In this document: piece after piece, positions 825 to 35,100 of the stretch
How the letters are laid out: each line of letters starts with the position of its first letter
Numbering within the stretch: the stretch's first letter is position 1
Source: Rebecca billardiae RCC1528
Taxonomy: Eukaryota; Protista; Haptophyta
NCBI GenBank assembly: GCA_965240325.2
Contig: OZ251231.1
Coordinates: forward strand, 2,547,988-2,611,987
Direction of reading: 5' to 3'
Length of the DNA stretch: 64,000 nucleotides
The notes under the pieces: generated by a model
What the model was told of the DNA's origin: nothing
What the model saw: only the letters and a program-made list of their open reading frames with translations
Database searches by the model: none
Translations under genes and position numbers: made by a program

Positions 825-3800
825 TCATGAAAAATGGCTGCCCGCGGCGGGACCTGCCGGCTGTGCATCGATGGCGTCGTCGTCATCGAGCAGGAACGAG
901 TTCGTGCGCTGTGGGCTGTGGTCCGACGCGGCGTGCGAGCCGGGCCCGGCGGCCGGGTGTCGCAGCAGCCCGCCCACGCCGCGCCCCGCCTTGCCCAGGG
1001 CGCCCTTTGCCGAGGAGACAGCCTGCGGCGCGCGCTCGCCCGCCGTGTCGACCGCCTTCTCGACAGCGTCCACCATCCGGTCGACTGACGAGTCGACGGA
1101 GCTCCACGCGTCGCCCACGCGCGAGGCGAGCTTGCCGCCCGCGTCGCCGAGCTTGCGCACGAAGCCGAGGCGCGGGGGCAGGGATTGCCGCCGCATCTCG
1201 TCCGCGGACGCGCCCGCGCCGTGGCCGTTGCCGTTGGCGGCTTGGCCGCCGCGCCCGCCGCCGCCGAGCGCAGAGGCGGTGCCGCGCGCGGGCTCGGAGA
1301 GCGCCGGCGAGGGCAGGCCGCCGGTCGCGGGCGTGGGCGGCTCGGAGGGCTCGAATCCGTTCGCGCCGTCGTGCCGCGCGTGCTGCATCGCCGCGCCGGC
1401 GGACAGCGGCCCGCCGCCTCCGCCGCCGCCGCCCACGTCGACGAGCAGCTCAGCAAAGCCGCCGCTGTCCAGCCCGGCGCCGGCGCCGCCCGCGGCCGCC
1501 TGCTGCGCGGTCGGCGGCGTCACCACCGCACTGAACGCGGCCATGAAGTCGTAGTCGCTCACGACGCCTGCGGCTGAGGTCGGCGGCGGCGGCGAGGCGA
1601 AGGTGGGCGGCGGCAGGGCTGCGACCGCCGCGCCCCCGCTCCCGAGCGTGCCCCACGCATGCGCGCCGTTCGTCTGCCCAGGCGGCGCGCCGCACTGGCC
1701 GCGGCCGTGGCCGTGCGCGCCCGACTCGGGCGCCGCCCCAAACCCGGCCAAGGGCGCGTCACCACGCGCGCCACCGAGCGCGCCACCGAGCGCGCCACCG
1801 AGCGCGCCACCGAGCGCGTGGGCCGAGCCGCTCGGGCTGACGCCGAGAGCGCCGCTGGCGCAGGGCGAGGGCTGCGGGGAGAGCGGCGCGCTCTGCGGCG
1901 GCGGCGGCGGCGCGAGCATCGGCGGCGGCGGCGCATCAGCAAACAGCGGCGGCTGCGGCGGCGGCTGCGGCGGCGGCTGCTGCGGCTGCGGCGGCTGCGG
2001 CTGCGGCGACTGCTGCGGCGGCGGCTGCTGCGGCTGCTGCTGCTGCGGCGGCGCGCTCATCAGCGCGTCGAGCCCGCCCAGCCCCGACGAGGCGGAGGGC
2101 GAAGGCGATGCGCCGCCGCTGCCGCCGCAGCCACCGCCGCCGCCGCCGCCGCCCGCCGAGCCGCGGCGCGCGGCCGCCGCCTCGTGCTGCGCGCGCGAGG
2201 CGGCCGCGCGCGCCTCGTCTCGCTCCGCGCTGAGCGATGCGCACGCGTGCCGCAGCTGCGCGCACTGCGCGCTCGCGGCGTCGGCGCGCTTGGCGGCGGC
2301 GGCGGCGGCGTGCTGCGCCTCGGCGCGCGCGCGCGCCTCCGCCTCCGCCTGCGCCTCGCGCTGCGCGAGCTGCGCGCGCGCCGCCTCCGCCTCGGCGCGC
2401 GCCGCCTCCGCGTCCGCGGCCGCCGCCCTCACCGCCTGCGCCGCGCCCGCCATCGCGCCGTCGTCCGCGTCCGCCGCGCGGCGCGCGGCGGACGCGGCCT
2501 CGCTCGCGCGGCGCTCGGCCTCGTCGCGCGCGTCGCGCGCGGCCTGCACCTCCCTCCGCAGCTCCGCGCCGCCCTCCCGCTCCGCCGCCAGCTCCGCCGC
2601 CAGCGCCGCGAGCTTGGCCTTGGCCGCAGCCTTGAGCCGGGCGACACCGGCCGACGCCTCGGCCTTGAGGGCGGCGGCGCGCGAGGCGGCGTCGTCGGCG
2701 CGCGAGGCGGCGTCGGCGGCGCGCTCGCGCTCGGCGGCGAGCTCGGCGGCGAGCTCGGCCGCGCGCGCCTCCGCCGCCGCGAGCGCGCCCGACGCCGACG
2801 CGCCCGCGGCGGCCGCCGCCGCGTCGGCCGCGCGCGCCGCCTCCGCGCGCGCCGCGCCCAGCGCGGCGCGCGCCTCGGCCGCGGCCGCCTCCGCGCGCTG
2901 CGCGCGCTCGGCGGCGGCGGCGAGCGCCTCCTCGGCGCCGACGCGCGCGGCCTCGGCGGTGTCCGCGCGGCTCGCCTCGCTCTTGATCTCCGCGACCAGC
3001 TCGCCCATCTTGGCGCGCGCCTTGGCCTTGAGCGAGTCGGCGCGCGCCTCCGCAGCGGCGCGCGCGTCGGCGAGCTCGGCGCGCGCGGCGGCCGTTTCGG
3101 CGCGCGCGGCGGCGGCGGCGGCGGCGAGCTCGTCGGCGGAGGCGGCGCGCTCGTCGGTCGCGGCCTGGAGCGCGGCCTCGAGCTCCGCCACGCGCGCGCC
3201 GCGCGCCTCCGCGCGCCGCGCCGCCTCCGCCGCCTCGTCGCGCGCGTCGGCGAGCGCGGCCGCGGCGCCGTGCGCGCGCGCCGCGCGCGCCTCCGCCGCC
3301 GCGCCGAGCTCGGCGTCGGCGGAGGCGAGCTCGGCGCCGAGGGTGGCGACGAGCGCCTCGGCGGCGGCGGTGGTTCGCGCGCCGCGCTCGCGCTCCGCGT
3401 CGATCTTCGCCAGCACGCGCTTCTTCCACTCGCGGAAGTGCCCGACCTTGTCCTCGTGCGCGCGCACGGCCGCGCACAGCGCGCGCGCGTCGCCGTCCGC
3501 GTCGCCGAGCGCGGACGCGAGGAGGGCGGCGTGCGCGCGCGCCTCGGCGGTGGCGAGGGCGGCGGCGGCGAGGTCCTCCTCGTGCGCCTCGAGCGCCGCG
3601 CCGAACTGCGAGACCACCTGCGCCTTGCTCGCCTCCGCGCCCTCCAGCCGCCGCGCCGCCTCCGCCGCGGCCGCGGCCGCGTCCGCGGCCGCGTCGGCGC
3701 GCGCGCGCTCGAGCGCCGCCGCCGCCTCGTCGGCGCGCGCGCGCTCGGCGTCGAGCGCGGCGAGCGCGTCGTCGCGCTCGCGCTCGAGCGCCTCCACCGC

Positions 3801-4589
3801 GCTCGCGCCGCGCTCCTCCACCTCGCGCAGCCGCGCGCGCAGCTCGTCGTCGAGAGCGCCCATCTTGCGCTTGGCGCGCGAGCGCGCGTCGAGCAGCGCG
3901 TCGCGCAGCGCGACGCACGACTCGTCGGCGAGGGCGAGCTCGGCGGAGAGCGCGTTCACGGCGGCGCGCACCTGGGTGCGCGTCAGCTCCGCCTCGTACT
4001 CGTCGCGCGCCACCTCCGTCATCAGCACGAGCGCGCGCGCGCGCGCGCGCGCCTCGCCCGCGCGCGCGTCGTCGGCTCGCGCCGCCGCCTCGTCCGCGGC
4101 GGCGAGCGCGTCGTCGGCCGTGTCGGTGGCGGCGCGCGCGGTGATCGAGGCGCCCACCAGCTCGTCGTCGAGCTGCAGCACCTCGCGCCCGAGCGCCGCC
4201 TCGCGCACGCGGCCCTCCGCCTCGAGGCTCTCCCTCTCGCGCGTCGCCTCCATCAGCGCGTCCTGGCTCTCATCGAGCTGCTCTCGCGCGGCCGCCTCGC
4301 GCGCGGCGCACGCGTCGAGCTCGGCGCGAGCGGCGGCCGCGGCGTCGGCGGCGTCGGAGGCGCGACGTTCCGCCGCCTCCGCCTGCGTCTTGAGCTTGAG
4401 CGCGCCCCGCCCCACGATCTGCTCGAGGCCGAGCATCTTGCGCTGCGTGCGGTGCAGCATCGCGTCTCGCTCGTTCACCTGCTCGTACAGCGCGGCGACG
4501 GTGCGGCGGAGGGCCTTGGCCTCCTCGAGGGTGAGCCGCTCCTGCGCCTCGTCCTCGCCATCGCCCACGATGGCCTGCAGCCAGTCCAT
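825..4589 (-). CDS. Large Ala/Glu/Arg-rich coiled-coil protein (~1250 aa) with a Pro/Gln/Gly low-complexity C-terminal region
   Basis: Single long ORF with coding-like codon bias; likely start MDWLQAIVG (ATG 4589); heptad-like helical sequence over roughly the first 800 aa; TA-rich patch just past the stop. Confidence 0.75.
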   Translation of the reverse strand: MDWLQAIVGDGEDEAQERLTLEEAKALRRTVAALYEQVNERDAMLHRTQRKMLGLEQIVGRGALKLKTQAEAAERRASDAADAAAAARAELDACAAREAAAREQLDESQDALMEATRERESLEAEGRVREAALGREVLQLDDELVGASITARAATDTADDALAAADEAAARADDARAGEARARARALVLMTEVARDEYEAELTRTQVRAAVNALSAELALADESCVALRDALLDARSRAKRKMGALDDELRARLREVEERGASAVEALERERDDALAALDAERARADEAAAALERARADAAADAAAAAAEAARRLEGAEASKAQVVSQFGAALEAHEEDLAAAALATAEARAHAALLASALGDADGDARALCAAVRAHEDKVGHFREWKKRVLAKIDAERERGARTTAAAEALVATLGAELASADAELGAAAEARAARAHGAAAALADARDEAAEAARRAEARGARVAELEAALQAATDERAASADELAAAAAAARAETAAARAELADARAAAEARADSLKAKARAKMGELVAEIKSEASRADTAEAARVGAEEALAAAAERAQRAEAAAAEARAALGAARAEAARAADAAAAAAGASASGALAAAEARAAELAAELAAERERAADAASRADDAASRAAALKAEASAGVARLKAAAKAKLAALAAELAAEREGGAELRREVQAARDARDEAERRASEAASAARRAADADDGAMAGAAQAVRAAAADAEAARAEAEAARAQLAQREAQAEAEARARAEAQHAAAAAAKRADAASAQCAQLRHACASLSAERDEARAAASRAQHEAAAARRGSAGGGGGGGGCGGSGGASPSPSASSGLGGLDALMSAPPQQQQPQQPPPQQSPQPQPPQPQQPPPQPPPQPPLFADAPPPPMLAPPPPPQSAPLSPQPSPCASGALGVSPSGSAHALGGALGGALGGALGGARGDAPLAGFGAAPESGAHGHGRGQCGAPPGQTNGAHAWGTLGSGGAAVAALPPPTFASPPPPTSAAGVVSDYDFMAAFSAVVTPPTAQQAAAGGAGAGLDSGGFAELLVDVGGGGGGGGPLSAGAAMQHARHDGANGFEPSEPPTPATGGLPSPALSEPARGTASALGGGGRGGQAANGNGHGAGASADEMRRQSLPPRLGFVRKLGDAGGKLASRVGDAWSSVDSSVDRMVDAVEKAVDTAGERAPQAVSSAKGALGKAGRGVGGLLRHPAAGPGSHAASDHSPQRTNSFLLDDDDAIDAQPAGPAAGSHFS

Positions 4590-6643: not shown

Positions 6644-9566
6644 ATGGCGACGCGCGCGTCGGCTCGGGTGGAGGCGCGCGCCGCGCAGGCGGCGGACGAG
6701 TCCGACACCGCGAGCTCGGCCTCCTCGGCCGACGAGCACGAGGGCGCGGGCGCGCGCGGACGCGCGCGCGGGCCGCCGCGCTCGAGCGCGCGGCGGCGCA
6801 GCGGCGCGCGAGAGGCGGGCTCGGCGGGCGGCGCGGCGGCGGAGGAGAGCCCGGCGCGCGCGCAGCCGCCCGCCAAGCGCGCGCGCGGCGCCGATCCCGC
6901 GCCCGCGCCGCCTGAGCCGGCCGAGCCCGGCGCGGAGCGCTGGGGCATTCGGCCGGGCGTGGCGGTCGAGGTGCGCATGAGCGACGAGGGGTGGGAGGGC
7001 AGCTGGTACGCGGCGACGGTGCTCGGCTCGCGCGGCGCGCGCGTGCGCATCAAGTGGGATGCCGCCAGCCACCCCGACGACGAGGAGGAGGCGATGGTCG
7101 ACGCGCCCGCGCTGCGGCCCGTGCAGCCGAGCGCGCCCGCAGACTTTGCGCGAGCGCTCGCGCCCGGCGCGCGCGTCGAGCTGCGGCACGACGAGGGCTG
7201 GTGGGAGGTGGACGTGCTGAGCGCGGGGCGGCGCAGCTACACCGTCAGCTCCGAGCTGTACGGCGTGACGCACGAGCACGTCGACCCGCGCCGGCTGCGC
7301 CCGCGCTGGGTGTGGGAGCCGCAAGGCGGGCACGCGCGCGAGGGCTGCTGGCGCGACGCGTCCGAGCCGGCCAACAAGTACAAGCGCGACGGCACCGAGC
7401 TCGGCCCGCCGCCGCCGCCGCCGGGCGCGGCGGGCGCGGCGGGCGCGCAGCAGGGGCTGCCGCACGCCGCGTCCGCGGGCGCCGCCACGCGCCGCGCGAG
7501 CGCGCCGCCCGCGCCCTCGGCGGCGGGCGGCGCGCAGCTCGGCGCCGCGCGCGCCGCGCTCGAGAGTGCGCACGCGGCGCTGGCTGCATACCGCCCGCCG
7601 TCGGCGCGCGCGAACGCGTTCCAGGAGGGCACGCTGCGCACGGGCGAGGACGGCGCGAGCTGGGAGGTCGCCATCGCGGACAACGGCTCGAGCGTCTGGG
7701 CCCTCGAGGGCGACGTGCCGCGCTTCCTCGCGCTGCACAACGCGCTGCACGCCAAGAGCGCGGCGGTGCGCAGGCTCGAGCGCGCGCTGCCGAGCGCTGG
7801 CGCGGGCGGCGGCGGCGGGGGCGGCGGGGGGCGCGGGGAGCGGAGCGCGGCGGCGGCGGAGGCGGAGGCCGCCGCCGAGGCCGCCGACGCCGAGCAGCGC
7901 TACGCCGACGCCCTCGCCGCGTGGCGCTCCGAGCTGGAGGGCCGCGTGGAGAGCGAGCTGCGCGCGCTGTGCGAGCAGGCGCGCGCGCGCTCGGGCGCGG
8001 AGCGCCGCCGTCTCAACGACGAGCTCGAGACGTCGGCGGCGTGGGAGTTCGAGTACGTCGGCGTGCGCCGCGCGCCGACGGACCTCGACGCGCCGACCTC
8101 GCGCGCCGAGCAGTACGAGGCCGTGCTCGACGACGGCACCTCCGCCGGGCTCGCGCCGACCGCGCGCGACGCCGCGCTCCGCCGCCACTTCCACGCGGCC
8201 GCGCACGCCGCCGCGCGCGCCGCGCTGCCGCAGCCCGACCGCGAGGGCGTGGAGGCGCGGCACGCGGAGCGGGAGGGGCCGGCCCGCCGCGCGGCGCGCA
8301 AGTACGCGTACGACGACGACGACGACGACGACGACGACTACTCGGAGAACATGTGGACCAAGCGGAAGGGCGGCGGCGGCTCGGGCGTGCGCACGCGCCG
8401 GTGCAACGCTTGCGCGGGCTGCACGCGCGACAACTGCGGCAAGTGCGCGCACTGCCTCAACATGGTGCAGTACGGCGGCAGCGGCCGGTCGAAGCAGGCG
8501 TGCAAGCTGCGCAAGTGCCAGAACCCCTTCCTCCCCGACGACGCCGACGCCGCCGCCGCCGCCGCCAAGGCTCGGCGCGCGGGCGCGGGCGAGGAGGAGG
8601 AGGCACCAGACCGCTGGGGGCTCGGCCTCTCAGCGTATGGCCTCCCGGACTGCGAGATCCCGCAGCGTCCGGTGCGCGTGCGGCTGCTGGTGCGCGACCC
8701 GGAGGGCGGCGTGCTCGTCGAGGCGCCCGCGCCCGAGGGCTGGAGGCCCGGCGGCGGCGGCCGGCTCGACGCGCCCGCCGCCGAGGGCGGCGCGTCGGGC
8801 GCGCCGCGCGCGGCCGCGCCGCTCGGCGACGCGGACGCCGAGGCGGCCGCGCCGATGGAGCTGGCCGACGAGCCGCCCGCCGAGGCGGCGGCGGTGCTGA
8901 AGGCGGAGCCGCCCGCCGACGCGCCCTCGCCGATGGAGACGGAGCCGCCCGCCGACGCGCCCTCGCCGATGGAGTCGGAGCCGCCCGCCGGCGCGCCGCC
9001 AGCGCGCGCGGCCGAGCCGGCGGCCGCGCCAGAGGGCGGCGCGCGGACCGCGGCGCACGAGGCCGCGCCCCCGCCCGCCGCCGCCGCGGCGGCGCCCGCG
9101 CAGCCGCCCGCCGCCGCGGCGCGCGCGCCGGCGGACGCGGACGCGCCCGCGCGCCGCGCCGCGGCCGAGCCGAGCGCTGCGGAGGGCGCGCCCTCGCTGG
9201 AGGCCACAGCCGGGGCCGCGGCGGCCGGGGCCGCAGCGGGTGCAGAGCTGGCGGAGGTGACACCGGAGGTGACGCCGCCGCTCGCGCAGCGCCCCGCCGC
9301 GCCGATGCGCACGCCGAGCGCGCCCACCGCCGCCTCCGCCGCCGAGCCGCCCGCCGCCGAGCCGCCCGCCGCGGCGACGGCTCTTGCGCCCGGCGCCGCC
9401 GCGCCGCCGGCGTCGGCGCGCGCCGCGCCGCCCGCCGCGGCCGACAAGGGCGAGGGCGAGGGCGAGGGCGCTCCGCTCGCGGCGCTCGCGCCCACGCCCG
9501 CGCCGCGCCGCTCCGCGCGCGCCGCCGCCGCCAGTGCCGCCGCCGCCTCGCCGCCCGCCGCGGACG

Positions 9567-9616
<50 letters not shown>

Positions 9617-10499
9617 GCGCCCGCGCCGCCGCTCCCCGCGTGGGCGCCGCGCACGCTGGACGGAGTGGAGGTGCGCATGAGCGGCGAGGGCCAGCACGGC
9701 TCGTGGTACGCGGCCACGGTGCTGCACGTGCGCGGCGGCCGCGCGCGCGTGCGCTACGCCGAGCTGCGCGAGGAGTACGACGCGAAGCGGCTGCAGGAGG
9801 CGTGGGTGGACGTGGCCGAGCTAAGGCCCACGCCGCCGAGCGCGCCGCCCGGCTGGGTGCGCGAGCTCCGCGTCGGCGCGCCGCTCGAGCTGCGCGTGCT
9901 CGACGGCTGGTGGGAGGTCGACCTGGTGCGCACCGCGCGCACGCGCGCGGGCCGCGGCCCGAGCTACACGCTCGTCGCGCCGCTGTACGGCATCGTGCAC
10001 GCGGACGTGCCGGCGGCGCGGCTGCGGCCCGCGTGGCTCTTTGAGCCTGCGCGCCCGCCGTGGGGCGCGCTCTGGACGCTCGCCTCCTCCGGCCAGCGGT
10101 ACACGTGGCGCGGGGACGAGCTGCCGCGCGCGGAGCCGCTGAGCGGGCCCGCGGCGCGCGGCCGCGCGCCGAGCGCCGGCCCGAGCGGCTCGCGCCCCGC
10201 CGACGCCTCGGGCTCGGAGGGCGGCGGCAGCGGCAGCTCGTCGGAGGACGAGGGCATGGCCGTGCTGCGAGCGCTCGCGGGCGCGCGCGCGCGCGGCGGC
10301 GCGCACGACGCCGGCGCCGAGGCGGACGGCGAGGAGGAGGCGGGGGACGCGGAGGCGGACGCGTGCGCCGTGTGCGCCGCGCGCCGGGCCAAGAAGCGCG
10401 GCCGGTGCGCGCGCCACCGCGCCGCGACGACCATCACGCTCGGCGGCGCGCGCCGCGGCGAGGGCGGCGCGTCAGAGGCGGGGCGCTCCGCCGGCCGCT

Positions 10500-10548
<49 letters not shown>

Positions 10549-11764
10549 GGCGGAGCGCGTCGCGGCGGAGCGCGCGGCGCGTCGGCGCGCGCGGCTGCTG
10601 CAGCTGCCGCCCACCTGCGTGCTCGACCGCGTCGTCACCCCGCGCGACTTCCTGTACGACCAGGTGGTCGAGTCGGCGCGCTCCTCCACGGGCTACCGCG
10701 GCGTGTACGGCCACCTGTCCGAGGACGGCCGCTCCGTCAAGTACTACGAGGCGCAGGTGAGCGTGCGCGGCGCGTCGCTCGCGGTCGGGCGCGCGCAGAG
10801 CGCGCACGAGGCCGCGCTGCTGCGCGCCGAGTGGATCGCCGGGCTCGAGACCGTCGGCGGGCTGCCGCGCGTCGGCGGCAAGGCGGAGCGCGACGCCCTC
10901 ACCGAGCAGCCCGCGCGCGCGTCCAAGCGCGAGCGCAAGGCCACGCGCGCGCCCGCCTCGCCCTCCTCCTCCGAGGCGTCGTCGTCCGAGTCGGAGGTGG
11001 AGCTGCAGATCGGCGACCTCGTCGAGGTGCGCGTGCAGGACGAGGGCTTCGAGGGCAGCTGGTACGGCGCCACCATCGCGCGGCTCGACGGGCTGCGCGC
11101 GCTCGTGCGGTACACACACCTGATGGAGGCGGACGGATCGGAGGTGCCGCTCGAGGAGTGGATCGTGCTGCCGCACCTGAGGCCGCCGCCGCCGAAGCGC
11201 CACCCGCCGGGCTTCCCCGAGAGCGTCGCGCCGCGCGAGGCGCTCGAGCTCTGGCACGACGACGGCTGGTGGGCGGTGCAGAAGGTCGAGGAGCCCGCGG
11301 ACGAGCTGGCGGCGGGCGCGGCGCGCGCCGCGGCCGCGGCCGCGCCCGCCGCCGACGCGGCGGCGCCCGCCGACGCCGACGTGCCCCGCTACCTGGTGCG
11401 CGCGCTCAACTTCAAGGCAGAGCACCGCGCGCGCGCGGACGAGCTGCGCCCGATGTGGCAGTGGCTCGGCGGGCACGAGTGGAAGGTGCTGCGCCACCAG
11501 CCCAGGCGCAAGTCGATGCTGCTCGGCGGCACCGCGCTCGCGCGCGCCGCCGAGAGCGTGTACGGAGCGGCGGGCGCGCGCGACTCGATCGGCGCGGGCG
11601 GCAAGGTCGCGCTGGCCGCGGTCGAGGCGCTCGGCACGCCCGCCGCGTGGGAGGTCGGCGCGTTCGCCGAGGTGGCCTTCGAGGTGGTCACGTTCCTCTG
11701 CCGCCGCCGCGAGCTGTGCGCCGCGCTGCGCGCGCGCCGCGCGCACCGCCTCGCCAACGCCGCC

Positions 11765-11795
<31 letters not shown>

Positions 11796-14115
11796 ACGCC
11801 GCGCCCGCGGCGGACGCGGCGGCACCCGCGGCCGCGGCCGCGCCCGCGGCCGCCGAGGCCGAGGCGAAGGACGTGGGCGCCGCGAGCGCGAGCGCGGCGA
11901 GCGAGCTCGCCGTGCCCTTCCAGCCGATCGCGCTGCCGCCCGCGCTGCCGCCCGCGCGCGGGCTCGTCTGCTTCGACGCGGGCGGCGCGTCCTCGCGCGG
12001 AGGCGGCAAGGCGGCCGCGGCCGCGGCCGCCGCCGCGACGGTCGCCGCGGCGGCGGCCGCGCTCGCGCACGCGCCGCCGCCGAGCGCCGAGCCGCCGGCG
12101 GCCCCGCCGCCGCCGCCGCCCCACGCCGCGCCGCCGCCGCCCCACCAGATCAACCTCGTCGTGCCCGCGGGCAAGGGCCCGGGCGACGTGCTGGCGGTGA
12201 GCACGCCCGCGGGCGGGATGGTGCACGTGCGGCTGCCGGCGGGCGTGGCCGCGGGCCAGCTGTGCCGCTTCGATCTGCCCGTGCAGCGGCCGCACGGCGG
12301 GTGGCAGCCGGCGGCTGCGGCGCAGCACGCGCCGCCGCCGCAGCACGCGCCGCAGCACGCGGGGCACGCGTGCGCGCAGCCGCAGCTGCGCGCGCAGCAC
12401 GCGCCGGGCGCGGGCGCGCAGCAGCACGCGCCGCCCGTGCACACGGCGCCGCACGGCGCGTGGCCGCCGATGGCGCCGCCCTACTCGCAGCCGCCGCCGC
12501 AGCAGATGATGGCGCACGGGCAGATGGTGCCGACGCAGGCGCAGCCCATGCAGCCCATGCAGCCCATGCAGCCCATGCAGCCCATGCAGCCCATGCAGCC
12601 CATGCAGCCCATGCAGCTGCCGCCGCCGCCGGGCGGCGGCGCCGTCGTCGCGCCGGGCGCGCCTGGCCGGGGCGGCGGCGCGCCCCCGCCCTACCACCCG
12701 CCGCCGCCGTCCAGCGGCGACGGCGGCGGCATGGCGGTCGGCGACGGGCTCGCTCGGCCGGGCGCGCCGCTCGGCCCGTCGCAGCACGCGCCGCCGCCCG
12801 CGCCCGCGGCAGGCGCGGCGGCCGCGCCGCCCGCGCCGCCGCCCGCCGCGCCCGCGCCCGCAACCGACGCCTACCCAAACCCCGCGAGCGCCGAGTTGCG
12901 CCACGGCGCGCTCGTGCGCGCGCTCGCCGAGCTCGGCCCGCACGAGGCGGTGCGGCTCGCCGTCTCCAGCCCGATGCCGCAGCCGGGCCACGGCAGCGGC
13001 GGCAAGTGGGCGCGCGGCGCCGAGCTGGTCGTGGCCAAGAACCACTTCAGCGTGCTCACCAACCTGACGGAGGGCGGGCCGTACGGCACGGCGACGCTGC
13101 TGGTCGAGCACGCGGGCACGCGCGCGCTGCACGTGCTGCGGCTGGCGCAGGGCGTGCCCGTCGGGCTGGGCTTCGCGATGGCGGCGCACGCCGCGGCGCG
13201 GCTGCGCGCCCTCGCGCCCGAGCTCGGCGCGGAGTGCGCCGAGCACGGCGCGGTGCGCGTGCCCTCGCGCCTCGTCTGCTTCCACAACGGGTACGGCTCG
13301 CTCGCACCGTACAGGCAGTGCGTCACGCTGGCCGAGCTGAACGCCGCCTTCTCCGAGTCGCACCGCCGCGTGGACGAGGTGCTCACGATGGCGTACACCG
13401 TCGAGCTCCTCCGCCTCGTCGAGCAGCTGCACCGCGCGGGCGTGGTGCACGGCCAGCTCGCGGCCGAGCACGTGCTGCTCACGATGGCGGAGGGCGCGGA
13501 CGAGGAGGGCGCGGAGGGCGAGGCGGAGGGGCGGGCGCCGCACCGCGCGGCGGCGGCGGCGAGCGTGGAGCCGCCGCCCGTGAAGCGGCGCGGCCCGGGC
13601 CGGCCCAAGAACAGCGAGCTCGCCGTCGAGCTCGCCGCGAAGGCGGCGGCCGCGGCCGAGCGCGCGGAGGCCGCGCCAGCCCCGGAGCCGGGCTCCTACA
13701 AGCCGCGCGTGCGCCTGCAGCTGATCGGCACGTCCAAGGCCCTCGACCTCAAGCAGCACCCACACGTGTGCGCAACAGCCGCGCACCGCGCGCACCGCGC
13801 GCACCGCACGCACCGCACGCGCGGCTCTGAGCGCGCGCCGCCCTGCCCCGCGCGCGCGCGCCGCGCTTGCTTCGCCTCGTTGCGCGCGCTGTGCGCCGCA
13901 GGGCGTGCTCTTCAAGCTGCCGCCCGTGCACCCGAAGGAGGCGCGGTGCGTGGAGCAGCTGGACGGCAGCCCGTGGTCGTGGCACGTGGACACGTTCGGG
14001 CTGTGCTCGGTCGTGCACATGCTGCTGTTCAACGAGCCGCTCAACCTCGAGCTGGTGAGACGCGCGGCAGCGCACCCGTGTGTGCGCGCGCGCGTGTGCG
14101 TGTGCGTGTGTGCGC

Positions 14116-21214: not shown

Positions 21215-24200
21215 ATGTTTGGCAACCTCTTCGGCCGGGGGAAGCCGCCGCCATCGGGCGGCGGCGACGAGTCGGGCGGGGCGAGGGTGGAAGGCGGCGC
21301 GCTGCCGCGCCGCAACTCCGCGGCGAGCGCGCGCCTCTCGGCGCAGGGCTCGGCGGAGGGCTTGGACGGCGGCGGCGGCGGCGGCGGGCGCGTGCCCGAG
21401 CTGGGCGAGATCGACGACCTGCTGCCGTTCGTCGAGGCGCGGATGGGCGAGATCCGCGAGCGCGAGAATAGCAAGTACTTCGCCAACGGCAACATCTTCG
21501 CCGGCGTCGAGGCGTGGGAGGGCAACCGCGTGCGCGTCGCGGTGCGCGTGCGGCCGCCCGTCGGGCGCGAGGAGGAGGCGGACGCGCACACGCCCGCGGT
21601 GGTGGCGGAGCCCGAGGTCGCGACGGTGGCGGTGAACGAGGCGGCGATCGGCCGCTTCGACCAGCCGCGCCTCGGCTTCGACGCCGTCTTCGGCCCGCAC
21701 GCCACGCAGGAGGACGTGTACCGCTCGCTGTGCGCGCCGCTGCTGCGCGACGTGATGCTCGGCCGCAACGGCACGCTGATGTGCTACGGGCAGACGGGCA
21801 CGGGCAAGTCGTACACGATGGGCACCGACGTGTCCAAGTCGGCGGTCCGCGACGCCGGCGCGGGCGAGCCCGAGGGCCCGCTCGTCGGCCTGCTCCCGCG
21901 CGCGATCCGCCAGCTGTTTGCGGAGGCGGCCAAGGACGAGGGCGCCGAGTACGAGGTGGGGCTGTCGTACGTGCAGCTGTACCGCGAGAAGTTCCAGGAC
22001 CTGCTCAACCCGTCGGAGGCGGCGCTGCAGCTGCACGACGCGCAGGGCTCGGTCTTCATCGAGAACCTCACCGAGCACCGCGTCACCTCCGCCGAGCACG
22101 CGCTGCGGCTCGTGCGGCGCGGCGGCGAGTTCCTGCGGACGGGCGGCACGCGGATGAACGCGACCAGCTCGCGCGCGCACGTGATCCTGATCGTCACGGT
22201 GCGCCGCGCGCTGAGGGGCGGCGGCGGCGGCGGGGCCGGCGGCGCCGCGGCTGCCGCCGCGCTCCCCGCCGAGCCCGAGACGCTCGAGGGCATCGACGCG
22301 TACCTGCGCGGCGCGCAGGCGACCAGCGGCCGTCTGCTGCTGCTCGACCTGGCCGGCTCGGAGCGGCTCAAGAAGTCGGGCGCGGACGCGGACGGCGCGC
22401 TGGGGAGCGAGGCGCGCGCGACGAACCTGTCGCTGCTCGCGCTGGGCAACGTCGTGCAGACCCTCGCGGCGAACGCCGAGCTCGGCTCCGCCTCCGCCGA
22501 CCCCTCCGCCGCCGGCGGCACCGCGCGGCGCCACGTCCCGTATCGAGACTCGAGGCTCACGCAGCTGCTGCGCGACAGCTTCGGCGGCGAGTGCAAGACG
22601 ACGCTGTGCGTGTGCGTCGGGCCGGCGCGCGCGCACGCGGGCGAGACGCTGTCCTCGCTCAACTTCGCGCGGCGCGCGATGAGCATCCAGGCCGTGCCCG
22701 CCGAGCACCTCGAGCTGCAGCTCGACTACAAGCTGCTGGCAGCCAAGCAGCAGCGCGTGCTGGACGCGCTGGCCACGCGCATCTCGCGCGTGCAGGAGTA
22801 CGCGCAGGCGCACGCGCACATGGGCAGCGTGGGGCGGATGGTGGCGGAGGCGCGGCGCGGGGGGTCGGCCGAGGCGCGCGGCGCGGGCGCCGACGACGCC
22901 GCCCCGCCGCCCTCGCCCGCCGCCACCGTCTCCGAGCTCGGGCGGCTGCTTGCCGAGCTGGCCGACCTGAGGCACGCCCTCACCGAGCTGGGCGAGGGCG
23001 CTGCCGGCGGCGAGGGCGGCGGCGAGGGCGGCGCGCTGTGGGCGGCGGAGGGAGGGGCGGCGGAGCAGGGCGGCGCGGGGCGCGCGGCGGAGCCGCGCCG
23101 CGCCGCGCCGCCCGCGCGCGCGCGCCGCCCAGGCTCGGGCCGCGCCGCGCACGCCGCCGCAGACGGCTCGGCGCCGCCCGCGGCCGGCGGCGGCGGCGGC
23201 GGCGCCGACGGCGGCGGCTCGGCGCTGCCGGCCGCGCTGCGCGGCTTGCGCGCCGAGCTGGGCAGCACGCGCGCGCTGCTCGCCGAGTGGACGGGCGCGC
23301 GCACGCAGGAGGAGGCCCTCGAGCAGATGCGCGCCGACCGCGACGAGCTACTTGCGCTCAGGGCCGCCGCCGCCGCGCTCGAGGGCGGCGGCGCCACCGA
23401 GCTGCGGCGCGGCGCCGCCGTCGCGGCCGTGCGCTCGGTGGCCGAGGCGGCGCGCGCGGGCGCGGAGGCGGTGGGCGCGCTGCCCGGCGCGTCGGTGGCG
23501 AGCGTGATCCGCACGCTGACGGCGGAGCGCGCCGAGCTCGCCGCCGAGCGCGCGCGCGTACGCTTTGCCGCCGCGAGCGCGCGCGCGATCGCGCGCGCCT
23601 CCGCCGAGCTGGAGCACGCCACGCGGCCGCAGCAGCACGGCGCGCTCACGGCGGGCGCGGGCGCGGGCGCGGCCGCCGAGGCCGGCGGCGCCGGGCCGCT
23701 GGCGGCGGCGCGCGACGGGGCAGGCGGCGGCGGCGAGGGCGGCGCGGGCGCGGCGGCGCCCAAGGTGCCCGCGCTCGCGGGCGTGCCGAGCGCGCGCGGC
23801 GGCGCGCGCCCCGCGAGCGCCGCCAGCGGCGGCGGCGGCGGCGGCGGCGCGGGGCTGCGCGGCGCGGGCGCGGCGGCGCGCGGGCGCGCGCCCTCGCCCT
23901 CGCGCGCGCGCGCCGGCAGCCTCGGCGCCTGCGGCGCGGCGGCGCGGCCGGCGGCGGGGAGCGCGCGCGGCGCGGGCGGCACCGAGCGCAAGCCGTCGCC
24001 GGCGCGGCGCGCGCCGCCCTCGTCTCAGGTGCTCGCGCGGCTCACCGCGGGCCAGCCCACGCGCCCGGCCGACGCGGGCGCGGACGCGGACGCGCCGCCG
24101 GCGCGCGCCGCCGAGCCCGCCGCCGCGCCGCCGCCGCCGCCGCCGCCGGGCCCGCCGCCGCTGACGCCGGAGCAGCAGGCGCAGCTGCTCGAGCTCGCGA

Positions 24201-26021
24201 GCGCGCGCTCGCTCGCCGCGGCGCGCGCGACGCCCGCCCCCTCCGAGGGCAGCGCCATGCGCGCCGCGGAGGTCGAGGTGTACAAGGCGATGGCTCCGCG
24301 GCTGCTGCACATGGCACCGGCCGCGGCCGCGGCCGCGCTGCGAGCGCTGCACCCGCGCGGCGGCGGCCGCGGCGGCGACGGCGGCGGCGCGGACGAGGCG
24401 GAGCACGCGCCGGAGCAGCCGCAGCTCGAAGGCGCGCGGCCGGCGCGCGCGCTGGACAGTGCGTGGCGGCTGGGCGAGACCGTCGCGCGCGCGCCCTCCC
24501 ACGCCGTGCGGCTGGTCTCCAGCGTGGACGACGAGGACGAGCTGTGCGTGTGCCATTGCTTCGAGCACGGCGTGGCGCCCGAGCTGGCGAGGTGCGGCGC
24601 GCGCGCTGCGGGGATGGCGGCGGTGGCGGTGGTGGTGGGTGCTGGCGCGCGCTGCGGGGATGGTGGCGGTGGCGGTAGTGGTGGGTGCTGGCGGGCGCTG
24701 CGGGGATGGCGGCGGTGGCGGTGGTGGTGGGTGCTGGCGCGCGCTGCGGGGAGCGCGGGCGCGCGCGCGCGGGTGGGCGCGCGGCGTGGCTCACGCGCGC
24801 CGCGCCCCGTGCCCTCCGCCGCGCCAGCGCCGTCCTCGAGCTGCGCGCGCGTGTCGACGCGCTGATCGCCGCCCGCCCCCTCGGGCTCGTGCGCGCACAC
24901 GGCTGGCAAGCGCGCGCGCGCGCGCGCGCACGCGTGCGCGCCTGCGCGGGTGCGCGTCGCGGGCGCGCGTCGCGGGCGCGCCGCTTACCCGCCGCGCCGC
25001 GCATGCGTTCTCTCGCCGCGCCCCGCGCGCGGCGCAGGTACGTCTCCGACGCGTGGGTGCGCGGGGCGCGCGTCGAAACCACGCACGTCGTCGTCGAGAG
25101 GCTGGGCGGCGGCTCGCTCGCGTCCGCGGTGACGCACGCGCCGTGTGAGGAACACACACAGCCGCGCGCGCTGGCGTGGGTGCGCGCGCCGTTCGAGGCG
25201 CTGGCGACGCTGCACGCGCACGGGCTGCGCCTGCCCGCCGCGACGCCCTTCGACCTCCGCCTGCCGCACGCGGACGCGCTCTCCGCGCGGCTGAGCAACC
25301 TCGGCTGGTCGCTGTGCGGCCACTCGCCCCCGCCCCCCTCCCTGTCCGACCTGGTGCGGCCGGCGTTCGTGCCCCACGCGGCCGCGGGACTGGACGCGGA
25401 GGAGGCGGGCGAGTACGGCACGCTGAGCGCGGCCGCGCTGGCGTACAACATGGGCGCGGTGCTGCACTGCCTGCTCCTCGGCCAGCCGCCCTCCTCGCAG
25501 TCCGTCGGCGCGCTGCGCATGTTTTACGAGTCGGGCGAGCTCGCAGACCCGGCTGTGAACGATGCGACCGGCGCGCGCGGCCGACGGCGCTCGTCGACAG
25601 AGGCGGGGCTGGAGCGCGTGGGCGCGGACGAGATCGAGGTGCTCTCGCCCTCGGTCGTGCACCTGCTGCTCGTCGCGCTCGAGCCGGCGGAGGCGGAGCG
25701 CGCAAAGCCGCAGGTGCGAGCGCGCGCGCGCGCAGCGACGCCGCCGCTCGCCGCGCGCCGCCGCGGCGTCGCTCACGCGCGCGCCCGCGGCCCCATCGGC
25801 GCGTGCGCTGCGCCGCCGTGCGCGCCCGCGTGCAGGAGCTGCTCAACCACCCGGCGTGGGCAGAGGCGCTGCCGCCGCCGCACGCGCCCCTCACGGCGGC
25901 GCACAGGCTGCTCACGCGGTACCACGCGGCCACGGTGGCGCGCGCGCTCGAGCAGGACCTCGCGCAGGCCGGCGGCGCGCTCGGCGCGCTCAGCGAGCGC
26001 TTCCTGCGCGCGTACGACTGA
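21215..26021 (+). CDS. Kinesin motor protein with a degenerate kinase-like C-terminal domain; exons 21215-24591, 25038-25713, 25836-26021
   Basis: VAVRVRP, GQTGTGKSYT (P-loop), MNATSSRAH, DLAGSER, HVPYRDSRLT; frame-consistent GT-AG introns. Confidence 0.85.
24599..24751 (+). repeat. 46-bp G-rich minisatellite (~3.3 copies) in kinesin intron 1
   Basis: Unit gcgcgcgctgcggggatggcggcggtggcggtggtggtgggtgctg at 24599, 24645 and 24691, partial at 24737. Confidence 0.9.
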
Positions 26022-28339: not shown

Positions 28340-29495
28340 CCTCTACTCTCTAGCCAGCGTGCACGCAGGCTCTGGCCACCGCGGGGCCAACGGTGTCAGA
28401 TGATCGCGTCGCGCCGTGCTGCACTCACGCACCGCCGTCCAGGCGAAGAAGCCTCGCCGTCGACGAGCGTGAGTGGCGCGTGCTGAAGGGCGAGACTTGG
28501 CGAGACCGCGAGACCGACTACCGAGGCAGGGAGCTCCCGAGACCCGAAAGTAACTCAGTCTCACAGTAAGTCGCCTGTCTGTCGCCTTGCCTGATGGCTG
28601 ATTTACAGGCGCGGCGACAGCGGGTTCCGAGCGGTCAGCGGTGCGTGCAATGCGCCCGTTACTAACAATAACATTAACGGTTCATGCGGCGCGTGAGTGC
28701 CGACGGCGACGGCTCCGAGCGGGCGCGGCACTCAGCGGCAATGTCCAAATGCAGGCACTGGTCACGGTGAGCAGAGCCTGCAGAGCGGAACACTGCCCGC
28801 CTCTCACTGAATACTGATTCTTTCTTGACTGATTGCTCAATACGAGCCGTCATAGTGCCAGCCAGCAGGACTCCTGTCTCACTCATCACGGTCCGTATCA
28901 GTGATTCGGAGACACAGGTACTAGGTAGGACGACGCGGCGGGTCTCCTGATTCGTCGGCGGCAGTGCCCGATCGTCGACACGAAGTCGGCGTTGGTGGCA
29001 GAGCATAGACTGCACCGCGATCGAAAAGCTTGAGCGCGGCCTTGAGCTGCTGAAGCGCGATCCACCTGCGCTGCGCGCGCGGCTCGCATGCGGACCTGCT
29101 GTGCCCCGAGCAAGGGCAAGGGTGCAGGTCCGGATGTCAGCTGGCAGTCTCAGCCGCTGGTAGCAGCTGGTCGAGCCTGCCCCGTGCTCCCCGGGCGGTC
29201 GCGTACACGCTTGCCGCGGCGGCGGCTGGCGCTGCGGCGACAGCGGCGTCGTCCAGGGTGCGCTTCGCCCGCTGCGGCGATGACTGAAAGTGAGTAAGTG
29301 ACAACGGATCCCAAACAATTCGTGAGTAAGTAAATGCAGTTCACTCATTATGACTGTACGACTTTCAACTTGATGATCATCCCGCCGCTCGCGAAATGAA
29401 AAGCAGGCGCGCCGCGTCCGCTGTGCCGCCGGCCGCCCATCGCCAACGTCCGCGATCGCTCGGCGCTCCGCGCCCCCTCTTCACAAGAACTGACG

Positions 29496-31719
29496 ATGCC
29501 GGCGCGCGGCGCACGCGCCCTGGCGCGCGGCGGACTGGCCGCCTCGGCGATCGGTCTGGCGCTCCTCGTGTGTGCTTTCGTGCGCGAGCACGCCGGCGCA
29601 CACGCCGACGCGCAGCCCCTCGCCCTCAGCCGCGCGGCGTTTGGCGCGCACCTGCGCCGCCTGCCCGCGCACGTGCCGCACCACGTGTGCGTGACGGGCT
29701 CGCACGCGGAGCAGACGGCGCGCGAGCTGCTCCTTCCCGAGGACGCCGAGCTGCGCGCGTTCGACATGCCCTCCCGCCTCAACCCGGAGAACGAGTGCAC
29801 CGCGCTCGAGGCGGCGGTCGGGCACACGCTCGTCACTGTCGCCGAGAAGATCGAGGACCGGTGCGCCGCGCGCTGGAAGGTGCACACGTCGACGTGCGAC
29901 GTGCTGGTGCACGCGGAGGAGGGCGCGGATTGCGAGCAGCTCTTCAAGCTCCGCGCCATCGCCGACCAGCCCCACGCGCCGCTCGTCGTGCTCGCCGCCG
30001 GCTGGTCGCACGACGCGGGCGCGTCGGCGGACGCGCCGCTGCTGCACTGCTACAAGGCGCGCGTGCGCCGCGCCGCGCAGCAGAATCTGGCGCCGCTCGA
30101 GGCGGAGGAGATGGTGCCGCACACGGCGCTGCCACTCCACGGTGGCGCGCGCACGGGCGTCGCGCTGCACGCGCTCATGCGCGAGCTGCTGGCGCAGACG
30201 GCCGGCGCGCGGCCGCACAGCCACGCGCACTGGCTGGCGCGCTCGGCGGCGCACGCGCAGCGCGACGACGCGCGCGCGCTGCGCGCGCGTCTGCTCGAGG
30301 GCAACCCGTCCGTGCGGGTGGTTGACGTGCACATTGAGATGATGAAGGCGTCACAGGGCCTGCCGCACCGTCTTGGCCACCTCGCGCCGCACGCGCCCGT
30401 GCCGGAGGCGGACACGCCGCCCGCCGCCGCGGAGCAGCCGGAGCAGCAGCAGGCGGAGGCGGGGCAGGAGCAGCCGCAGCAGCGCCGCCGCCGCGCGCAG
30501 GAGGATGTGCAGGCCCTCGTGATCGCGGCGGACGCTGGCATGGTCAGTGCCGGCTTCGCTGGCGATGACGCGCCGCGCACCGTCTTCCCCGCGATCGTCG
30601 GCCGCCCGCGGCACACCGGCGTGATGGTGGGCATGGGCCAGAAGGACGCGTACGTGGGCGAGGAGGCGCAGTCGAAGCGGGGCATCCTCACGCTCAAGTA
30701 CCCGATCGAGCACGGCATCGTGACCAACTGGGACGACATGGAGAAGATCTGGCACCACACCTTCTACAACGAGCTGCGCGTCGCGCCCGAGGAGCATAAG
30801 GTGCTGCACTCCGAGGCACCGCTCAACCCGAAGGCCAACCGCGAGAAGATGACGCAGATCATGTTCGAGACGTTCAATGTGCGCGGGTTCTACGTGTCGG
30901 TGGACGCGGTGCTCGCGATGTACGCGTCGGGGCGCACGACGGGCATCGTGCTCGAGGCGCGCGCTGGCGTGACCCATGTCGTCCCCATCTACGAGGGCTA
31001 CGTGCTGCCGCACGCGGTGCTGCGGCTCGACATGGGCGGGCGCGACCTGACAGAGTACATGATGAAGCTGCTCAGCGAGCGCGGCTACTCGTTCAGCACC
31101 TCCGCCGAGCGCGAGATCGTGCGCGACATCAAGCAGAAGCTCGGCTACGTCGCGATCGACTACGACGAGGAGCTCGAGAAGGCGGAGACCTCCTCTGAGC
31201 TCGAGCAGAACTACGAGTTGCCCGACGGCCAGATCATCACGGTCGGCAACGAGCGCTTCCGGGACACCGAGGCTCTGTTCAAGCCCAACTTGATCGGGCT
31301 GGAGCAGGAGGGCATCCACAAGCTGCTCTTCAACTCCATCATGAAGTGCGACGTCGACATCCGGAGGGACCTGTACAACAACATCGTGCTGGCGGGCTCC
31401 GAGACGATGTACACGGGGATCGCCGAGCGCGTGCAGAAGGAGATGAAGGGGCTCGCGCCCGAGTCGATGACCATCAAGATTGTGCGCGCACGCGCGCGCG
31501 CGCGTTCGTGTGTGCGTGCTTCACCGCGTGGGTGGCCGCGCTCACTCGTGCGGTGTCCGCCATCCCGCCGCATCGCAGATCGCGCCGCCTGAGCGCAAGT
31601 ACTCCACGTGGATCGGCGGCAGCATCCTCGCCTCGCTCAGCACCTTTGAGGAGATGTGGATCACGAAGGCCGAGTACGACGAGTCCGGCCCGGGCATCGT
31701 CCACCGCAAGTGCCGTTAG
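29496..31719 (+). CDS. Divergent actin with a ~335-aa N-terminal extension (hydrophobic leader, globular domain, RRRR); exons 29496-31481, 31579-31719
   Basis: From 30501: [65 protein letters not shown]; the upstream 335 codons are in frame, stop-free and coding-biased. Confidence 0.88.
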
Positions 31720-32178: not shown

Positions 32179-35100
32179 ATGAAGACCATCAAACAACCCT
32201 CAGCTGACGATGCAAGCTATCGGCGTCGCCGTGAAAGTTTGTCTCGCACCTTCGAAAGCCTTCTCGATTCCCTTGCTCGATTCCAAACTCCGCAACACGC
32301 AGTTCAGGTGAACCGACCCCGAGCCCGAGCGCTCCAGACGCACCCTGACGGGTACAACGTCCGACGCCATCGCAACATGCTGCGTGCCCACGGGGAGTCG
32401 CAGAAGCGTGTCGAGCCAGAGGGCTCTCGCCTGAGTCGCGTCCCGCTGTCGTCGCGCTCACGCGCGCTGCAGCGCATCCTGAACGGCAGGAGCGCGCCCC
32501 CCGAGCCGCTTCATTACGAGGAGCCGCTCACCTACCAGGGCCGGCTCATCCTGGGTGACGAGACGGAGCTCGCCCGCACTCGGCGGGAGCGCTTGGTGCT
32601 TCCCATGGTCCTTGTTGTGGTGCGTGCTGCGCGGAGCGCCAAGCCCCACGCCCGCCGCTCGAGCGCGCGTGCGCGCGCAGCGCACCCCGTCTCACGCGCT
32701 CGTCGAGCGTCGGTGTGCGCGCGCGCGCACACAGGTGGGCGTGCTCTCCGGGTGCGTGGCGAGCTCGGTGCACGCCATATCGAAGCGGCTGCTCAAGGAG
32801 CGCCTCAAGATTGTCTTCGCCGCGGAGGCGGCCTCGGGCCTCGCGGTCGGCGGCGTCGTGTACGTGTTGACGGGTGCCGCGTGCGCGCTGCTCGCTGCGC
32901 TCATCGTCGAGATGATCGCGCCGGCGGCGGCGGGGTCGGGCATGACGACGGTGCTGCTCTTTCTGAACGGCTGGCTCCTTCCCGACGCGTTCAGGATCGA
33001 GACGCTCCTCGTCAAGCTCGCCGGTCTGGCGCTCGTCTCCGCCTCGGGCCTCGCCGCGGGCGAGGTGTGCGCGCGCGCGCGCCACCCAGCGGCCGGCCGC
33101 GTGGCGCTCCGCGCGCGACCCGCGCGATGGCTCACGCTGCCGCTGCGGCTGCGCTCCCGCGCGTGCCGCCCTGGCCTCGCCCGCAGGAGGCTCCGCTCAT
33201 CCACGCGGGCACGATCGTCGGCAGCCTCGTGTGCGACGTCGCCTCGCGCACCGTGCTCACGCGCACCGTCGAGGTGCACGGCCGCGGCCGCTCGCTGATC
33301 GACCTCGCGGCGACGGGCGGCGGCGCGGCGCTGGCGGGCGCGTTCCTCGCGCCGGTGTCGGGCGTGCTCTTCGTGATGGAGGAGCTGGGCACCTTCTGGT
33401 CCAAGACCCTCCTCGTGCGCTGCTTCGTCGCCTCCGCCTCCGCCGCCATCGTGGGCTCGCTGTACACGTTCCTCGAGAGCCAGCCCGGCCTCAACCCGCT
33501 CACCACGCCGGTGGTGGCCGAGTCGCTGCTCGAGGCGGAGGTGGGCATCTCGTGCACGGGGAACAGCGGGCACGGCACCACGTTCCTCCCGATCGAGTAC
33601 ATCGCCTTCGCCGCGATCGGCGCGATCGGCGGCGTCGCGGGCTCAGGCTTCAACGCGGCCGCTGCCTTTGTGCTCGCGTTCCGCTCGGACTGGCTGCGGC
33701 GCAGCATGGCCGTGCGGATCGCTGACGTGGCGGTGGTCGCGACGATCACGGGCGTGCTCTTCTACACGATCGCCGCGTCGTGGCCGTGCACCACGCTCGA
33801 CTACGCCTCCGCGCCGCCCGTCATCCTCAACCACGTCTCGACGCTCGGCTGCCCCGCGCCGGGCGCGTGGGCGCCGTACCCGGGTGGGTTCAAGTACGGC
33901 AAGTACCCCAAGCAGTGGAACGAGCTCGCCTCGCTGCTCTTCGCGCAGCCGCTCGCCGCGGCGGGCATGCTGCTCTCGGTCGAGCACGTTGCGCTGTCCG
34001 CCGGCGCGTGCGCGGTGTACGCCACCACCTTCTGCGCGCTCGCCGTCTTCGCGCTCGGCATGGTCGTGCCGATGGGCCTGCTGCTGCCGAGCGTCGCGGT
34101 GGGCGCGGGCTTTGGGCGCGCGGCCGGCATCCTCGCCGGGCTGATCGCCGGGCAGCCGCGCGCGCAGGGCGTGTACGCGCTCATGGGCGCGGCCGCGTTT
34201 GTCAGCGGCACCTCGCACAACACGAGTGCGCGCCCGCGCGCCCGCGCGAGCGCGCGAGTGGCCCACCTCCTCCGTGCGCGGCCACGAGGCCTGCTGCCGC
34301 CGCGCGCCGTGGGCCGTCGCGCGCGCCCTCGCCGCGCGCCCGTCCGCGGCCGCCACGGCTCTGCAGTAGCTGACCGCCTGCTGCCCCCGCGGCGGTGCAC
34401 GTGCCGTGCGCGCGCGCAGTCGCATTCGTGATGATCCTGATCGAGCTGATGAACAACACGACGGTGTGCGCCGTCTCCCTCGCCATGCGCGCTCGCGCCG
34501 CGCTCCCCGCTCACGCGTGCGCACGCGCGCCCGCCCCGCCGCCCTGCCCTCTGGCGCGCAGTACATCCTGCCGTGCATCGTGACGATGCTGTGCGCGCTC
34601 TCCGTCTCGCAGGCGCTGGGCAAGCCCTTCTACGAGACGCAGCTCGACACGTCGGGCCACCCGTACCTGCGGCAGGCGGACGAGACGCTGCCGGAGCTCA
34701 ACCTGCTCACGGCCGCAGACGTGATGGCGCCAAACCCGACCTGCCTGCGCACGCGCGAGCGCGTCGGCACGCTCGCCAAGCTGCTCGCCGACCAGGTGGA
34801 CTGCTACGGCTTCCCGCTCATCGACGCGCTCGAGTCGAACCGGCCCGACGCCTCGCGCTCGCGGCTGAACAGCACGAACACGGCGGACGAGAACTGGGAC
34901 AAGGTGCTGCCGCTGCCGGGCAAGCGCACCTCGGCCGCGAGCGCCGCGGGCGGCGCCGACCCGCGCGCGCTCGGCGCGCGCGCGAGCTTCCGCGGCTTCG
35001 TCAAGCGCGACTCGATCATCGCGCTGCTGCTGCGCATGGCGGACGAGATCGCGGAGGACGAGCCGCGCCCGAAGCGGATGTCCAGGTTCGATGCGCTCAA

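Follow-up and report, generated by a model that had tools for sequence, protein, structure and literature searches.

The actin sequence described here is probably the C-terminal module of a real and selectively maintained fusion protein of 708 residues, a reading to which a rough probability of 0.7 is assigned. The predicted protein was composed of a hydrophobic leader, an Arf-like pseudo-GTPase domain, a linker ending in RRRR, and an actin in which the nucleotide site was dismantled.

The gene lay on the forward strand of the window, the whole stretch of 64,000 nucleotides that was analysed, and contained two exons. Exon 1 (29496–31481, 662 codons) encoded the leader, the pseudo-GTPase domain, the linker and most of the actin, and exon 2 (31579–31719) encoded the last 46 actin residues and a TAG stop codon (31717–31719). 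The phase-0 GT..AG intron between them (31482–31578, 97 nt) restored the sequence ...TIKI/IAPPERKYS... upon splicing, and the introns of the window were of the spliceosomal type, which marks the window as nuclear DNA of a eukaryote. The leader was an uncharged run of 18 residues (aa 12–29; 29529–29582), followed by the Cys/His-rich pseudo-GTPase domain with a predicted Arf/Sar-like fold (aa 44–296; 29625–30383). A low-complexity P/Q/E/A linker (30384–30500) closed with the RRRR motif (30483–30494), two residues before the start of actin. The exon-1 part of the actin module (30501–31481) covered actin residues from about 3 to 328 and contained all five altered nucleotide motifs. The Pfam Actin family (PF00022) matched the exon-1 part with E = 3.7e-102 and exon 2 with E = 2.7e-20. 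The initial annotation had assigned the span 30501–31719 to actin; this span was indeed actin, but it contained the 97-nt intron and was only a part of the 708-residue fusion. Its statement that stops and frameshifts were lacking was confirmed.

The 708 codons began at the ATG at 29496, and actin formed the last 373 of the 708 residues, starting from aa 336. GC3 was 0.86–1.0 in a single open frame from 29496 to 31445, with a value of about 0.95 over 2 kb. Upstream of 29496 it went down to 0.6–0.7, and an in-frame stop was located at 29397. The one reading frame of high GC3 from this ATG indicates that actin is only the C-terminal module and not a stand-alone protein. The GC content of the window was 57–84% per 2 kb, and long chance ORFs were numerous in all frames. 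The highest values, 80–84%, were found at window positions 2001–4000, 8001–14000, and 22001–26000, with 65–72% in adjoining coding regions. Among public sequencing runs, none contained more than 11% of the words of the gene, and its own protein was absent from the protein collections searched.

The leader was judged by simple hydrophobicity and charge rules. Its N-terminal flank carried a charge of +4 and its C-terminal flank a charge of −1. An N-terminal hydrophobic run was also present in 21 of the 22 family members that started with Met, and the leaders of several members were short and resembled cleavable signal peptides. The N-domain was modelled by AlphaFold (AF2) from a 22-sequence alignment with a pLDDT of 90 and a pTM of 0.89. 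When the model was compared with known structures by VIA-align, the best match was an Asgard Arf with a Z score of 12.2 over 166 residues, followed by Arf1, Arl10B, RagD, and Sar1, and SR-beta was among the fold matches with a Z score of 8.7. Foldseek gave Ras/Rho matches at about 1e-4, and a structure search of the ESM Atlas returned generic GTPase folds only. A Pfam match to the N-domain was sought and none was found, and an ESM Atlas feature search gave nothing.

Although the fold was shared with the Arf/Sar/Arl GTPases including SR-beta (Z 12.2 to 8.7), the N-domain differed from them in lacking the G1 (GxxxxGK[ST]), G3, and G4 motifs as well as a Pfam match. The Walker A and NKxD motifs were found in none of the 22 members, and a conserved DxxG was also absent. 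Where a GTPase has its P-loop, switch II, and G4, the family had conserved Cys and His residues instead, in the motifs HHVCVTG, DRC, and the family consensus HAHxGxDC, the last of which was HAEEGADC in the present protein. A small-GTPase fold in the model combined with the loss of the G motifs indicates that the N-domain is a pseudo-GTPase. SR-beta shared a further feature with the present protein, as its domain is also located behind an N-terminal hydrophobic segment. A Rossmann methyltransferase reading of the pro-region was rejected since the fold searches return small GTPases.

The N-domain contained 6–8 conserved cysteines. Two of them, one after DQ... and one in PLxxxC, were both present in 15 members and both absent in 8, and neither occurred singly in any member. 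This co-occurrence had been considered as evidence of a disulfide bond, and it was downgraded because those members without both cysteines that were in the N-domain tree belonged to one supported clade, which included the present protein, and may represent one event. In about 17 of the 20 full-length members, a basic motif preceded the first strand of actin by 5–12 residues. It was RRL in most of them, with the variants RARR, KKKR, RMKR, and KR, and RRRR in the present protein. Judged from the sequence, a cut at this motif would give actin an acidic N-terminus resembling the native one.

The N-terminal 335 residues were used in an exhaustive HMMER search against 1.84 billion representatives, which returned 25–26 proteins with phmmer E values of 1e-113 to 1e-10. 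Many of these relatives were 600–820 aa in length and carried actin behind the same domain. Further members were obtained from a word-indexed search and from metagenome contigs, and about 30 relatives, drawn from transcriptomes and metatranscriptomes of marine protists, had the same architecture. P0275 originated from the transcriptome MMETSP1110 of the cultured dinoflagellate Effrenium voratum, and other members from Tara and JGI data. Most members were mRNA-like contigs of 2.0–2.6 kb with one complete uninterrupted ORF each, which indicates that the fusion is real and expressed in the relatives. The present protein contained the N-domain motifs that define the family, HHVCVTG, DRCAAR, and TCDVLxHA, followed by actin in one ORF. 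A metagenome scan with a six-sequence N-domain alignment detected 10 loci, all with an identity of 48% or less, and a scan with a single N-domain protein gave no match. No orthologue with the phosphate loop 1 of the present protein was found among proteins of 180–574 aa and 239–761 aa, and P0238 was the sole close relative found. The literature was searched for signal-leader or GTPase-fused actins, and no report was found, the 2024 actin-evolution review included; the family of leader, pseudo-GTPase, and actin fusions was thus undescribed in the literature searched.

Complete ORFs of 279–344 residues that encoded the leader and N-domain and ended before any actin were also observed (L006, L010 / P0244, P0249), which indicates that the pseudo-GTPase domain also exists as a stand-alone protein.

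The initial annotation had described an ATP pocket substituted in five motifs, and alignment to conventional actins located every one of them. Phosphate loop 1 (30525–30548) was AADAGMVS instead of the canonical DNGSGMVK, phosphate loop 2 (30954–30968) was EARAG instead of D(S/A)GDG, and the adenine loop (31392–31403) was AGSE instead of SGG(T/S), with S300A as an additional change. The Q137D codon was at 30903–30905 and the E214Q codon at 31134–31136. The positions changed among the invariant columns, defined as those with the same residue in all compared conventional actins, were D11A, N12A, G13D, S14A, K18S, Q137D, D154E, G156R, D157A, E214Q, S300A, G302S, and T303E. Invariant columns adjoining the pocket were also changed, namely L105H, T106S, S141A, L142M, T162V, L180M, A181G, and V339T. 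The cation ligands Asp11, Gln137, and Asp154 and the phosphate-binding Lys18 were gone, the obligatory glycines Gly13, Gly156, and Gly302 bore side chains, and the ribose and adenine contacts Glu214 and Thr303 were altered. The nucleotide and cation site was dismantled, and by its sequence canonical ATP/Mg binding and hydrolysis should therefore be impossible.

The changes were concentrated at ligand contacts, as had been claimed. Among the 22 pocket positions that were invariant in 105 conventional actins, 11 were changed, against 18 of the 248 invariant positions elsewhere (odds ratio 12.8, Fisher p = 1e-6). The pocket was represented here by a list of nucleotide and cation contacts in actin structures.

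The rest of the module remained close to conventional actin (PF00022). The full-length fold was retained, and the module was 82% identical to the closest conventional actin, P0058, in an alignment with 104–105 conventional actins. The alignment also bore out the near-canonical state of the D-loop and His73, and these, together with the hydrophobic plug region and the barbed-end cleft residues, were canonical for the clade. Lys213, Arg210, and Lys336 were kept, and insertions relative to actin were absent. The differences from conventional actin were the replacement of all five motifs, the fusion of about 335 residues in front, and the CR end. In place of the stand-alone protein of about 375 residues with an intact nucleotide and cation site (DNGSG..K18, Q137, DxGDG, E214, GG(T/S)) that characterizes conventional actin, a fused module with an altered site was found. 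The C-terminus had been described as a change from CF to CR; CR was present, but CT, not CF, was the end of the nearest conventional actins, which makes the change one from T/F to R.

In the actin tree, from which Arp sequences were left out, the present actin was placed among the nine conventional actins of a clade with a support of 99, whereas the other family members were placed elsewhere. These placements hint at past homogenisation with the host actin. The nearest conventional actin proteins, P0058 and P0059 (L012, L013), had a GC3 of 0.11–0.18 while that of the present gene was 0.95. Their organisms and that of the present gene were thus opposite in base composition, yet clade-specific actin residues were common to both.

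The pocket was not uniform in the family. The motifs DNGSG, Q137, and DxGDG were intact in 6 of 20 full-length members (P0251, P0280, P0315, P0316, L004, and L005), of which P0315 and P0280 were essentially conventional actins. In the other 14 members the pocket was altered in various ways, most extremely in the present protein and P0238. On the N-domain tree, the altered pocket needed four changes, and at least two of them were forced by well-supported branches. Pocket loss that was repeated at least 2–4 times indicates that the family context relaxes the need for a nucleotide site. Residue Asn12, with which the only N-glycosylation sequon of actin (Asn12-Gly-Ser14) begins, was replaced in 12 of 20 members. 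Its loss would fit exposure to a lumen, and it would equally fit simple decay of the pocket.

P0238 was encoded on the 3-kb Logan contig L001 (gene span L001:280–2476), with an intron at the same codon as in the present gene. The two proteins were 70% identical in the N-domain and 49–55% identical in actin, and the actin C-terminus of P0238 was truncated (…WITN stop). The two were sisters in the N-domain tree with a support of 100. For actin, the tree constrained to the sister pair was better than the result of the free search by 12 lnL, with a p-AU of 0.72. The present actin had 41 non-canonical residues in total, of which 17 were identical in P0238: D11A, N12A, S33A, T106S, A131G, Q137D, S141A, D154E, T162V, C170V, L180M, A181G, I192L, T201S, V260A, S300A, and V339T. 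These shared derived residues indicate that the loss of the pocket is older than the divergence of the two genes. A further 13 of the 41 were changed in both proteins to different residues, and 7 of these 13 were in the pocket (positions 13, 18, 156, 157, 214, 302, and 303), where P0238 had F13, Q18, D156, E157, K214, T302, and N303. The initial annotation had proposed that Asp13, Arg156, and Glu303 could fill or bridge the empty cleft; at these three positions the sister thus differed from the present protein.

The two sister actins differed in rate. Unique changes numbered 9–11 in the present actin and 129 in P0238. In a three-taxon comparison with a conventional-actin outgroup, dN was 0.031 on the branch of the present gene and 0.335 on that of P0238, with a pairwise dS of 0.66. 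The corresponding omega was about 0.1 for the present actin and about 1 for that of P0238 if dS was shared equally between the branches, dS being unpolarised between the two genes because the outgroups P0058 and P0059 had a GC3 of 0.11–0.18 against 0.95. The change of actin about ten times slower than in the sister, with an omega near 0.1, indicates selection and not decay. The same distinction had been proposed in the initial annotation, and the clustering in the pocket, the loss shared with P0238, and the dN of about 0.03 against 0.33 all upheld it. The remainder of the actin was accordingly under strong purifying selection, and this applied to the D-loop and the barbed-end cleft as well as to the surfaces for polymer contacts and ligands. 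Gene conversion from the conventional actin of the genome could mimic such selection at actin residues 34–105 and 202–259, which were the stretches without shared derived sites. However, if conversion had left all pocket motifs untouched, this would in turn imply selection for the dead pocket. In P0238, actin evolved near the neutral rate and the N-domain was constrained, with a pairwise omega of 0.37.

With such a pocket, the module would most likely function as a nucleotide-independent binding or assembly unit with the actin fold rather than as an ATPase. As for its location, the positive-inside leader and the conserved basic motif give roughly even odds that the leader targets the body of the protein into the secretory pathway, where actin may then be released with a near-native N-terminus. 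The chance that the body is luminal or secreted is correspondingly about one half. An extracellular or luminal role was supported circumstantially by the leader, which is fused and family-conserved, and by the likewise conserved basic motif ahead of actin. That a leader is combined with a dead Arf-like domain and a basic site in many marine protists also suggests that actin is put to use outside the cytosol.

A more far-reaching reading, which is less likely than not, is that of a marine protist family in which actin is routed to the secretory pathway as a pro-protein. It would consist of a leader, a pseudo-GTPase domain stabilised by disulfides or metal, a basic cleavage site, and the actin, and in the present lineage it would release an actin that has become nucleotide-free, with its filament and ligand surfaces all kept, and that acts outside the cytosol. 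If this is true, the secreted nucleotide-free actin could polymerise in a lumen or outside the cell, it could serve actin-binding proteins or nucleases of the DNase I type as a decoy, or it could be delivered to other cells and poison their filaments.

The main rival, which is possible but rather unlikely, takes the leader for a reverse signal anchor, so that the pseudo-GTPase and the actin face the cytosol; the tethered, non-hydrolysing actin would then seed, anchor or cap normal filaments at the membrane. The near-conventional surfaces of the actin argue against a luminal location and for this rival, as conservation to such a degree is usually credited to many cytosolic partners. The essentially conventional P0315 and P0280 with intact pockets point in the same direction, as does the membrane-anchored SR-beta among the fold matches of the N-domain (Z 8.7). 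Furthermore, three relatives carried a beta-thymosin/WH2-like tail after actin, which is a cytosolic actin-ligand motif. It was located at the C-termini of P0239 and P0264 and at the ORF end of L002, examples of the motif being FDKTNLQETE..NPLP and FDKSLLKHAKT..NPLPTKE. Such a tail would sequester the actin to which it is fused and keep it monomeric. The orientation required by a cytosol-facing anchor, however, is opposed by the charge distribution, since the N-flank was more positive than the C-flank both in the present protein and in most members. Several leaders resembled cleavable signal peptides and were too short to span a membrane, and the 6–8 conserved cysteines of the N-domain also stand against a cytosolic location. 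Repeated pocket loss, in addition, would be easier away from cytosolic ATP and the actin cycle.

It is improbable that the pocket was remodelled for another ligand or a non-canonical nucleotide, bound for example by Arg156, Lys336, and Arg210, and that the protein is still a regulated switch. The new residues were polar or charged (Asp13, Arg156, Asp137, and Glu303) and Lys213, Arg210, and Lys336 were retained, as such a site would need. But the glycines of phosphate access were filled, and P0238 had other residues at the same positions, which looks more like a loosened constraint than like a new site under conservation. Slightly less probable still is that the leader forms the signal-peptide part of a two-part presequence that directs the protein to a complex plastid or the periplastid space. 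At least one host was a dinoflagellate with a complex plastid, but the conserved domain began just 15–40 residues past the leader, and neither a transit-peptide-like region nor an aromatic +1 motif was seen by eye. A decaying or unexpressed actin duplicate, by chance in frame with an upstream ORF of a GC-rich genome, is very improbable: the long chance ORFs on all frames, the small share of the gene's words in any public run, and a sister copy with a near-neutral and truncated actin would suit a pseudogene, but the GC3 of 0.95 over 2 kb of one frame, the conserved and spliceable intron, the same fusion in about 20 transcript-derived relatives, the dN ten times below that of the sister, and changes clustered in the pocket instead of scattered all speak against it.

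Few eukaryotic proteins are as conserved as actin, and its bound nucleotide is regarded as essential for monomer stability and filament dynamics. The present protein represents a natural actin with conventional surfaces under purifying selection despite the loss of the whole nucleotide site. It could therefore reveal how the fold is stabilised in the absence of ATP and which functions of actin are nucleotide-independent, and the range from intact to dead pockets among the members is a ready comparative series. Degenerate-site Arps such as yeast Arp7 and Arp9 likewise employ the actin fold for structure or binding, their ATPase site being non-functional. The Arps form old, separate clades with insertions and an identity to actin of roughly 20–50%, whereas the present actin was placed within the conventional actins, kept their surfaces, and had no insertions.

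The nearest precedent for a fused actin was the ubiquitin-actin gene of chlorarachniophytes, in which actin is the C-terminal part (PMC6332867). In both cases, loss of the N-terminal partner would bare a native-like acidic actin N-terminus. The present protein differed in that the partner was a leader with a pseudo-GTPase, cleavage was deduced from the basic motif, and the pocket was lost. Chlamydomonas NAP1 is a stand-alone, polymerising, ATP-binding actin with an identity of about 65%. It is a divergent, lineage-specific algal paralogue present beside conventional actin (PMC6789165, PMC12050087). When compared with NAP1, the present actin was more conventional overall, but its pocket was dead and it was fused.

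Downstream of the gene, an ORF at window positions 32179–34431 had a hydrophobic, membrane-protein-like middle and possibly encodes a channel or transporter.
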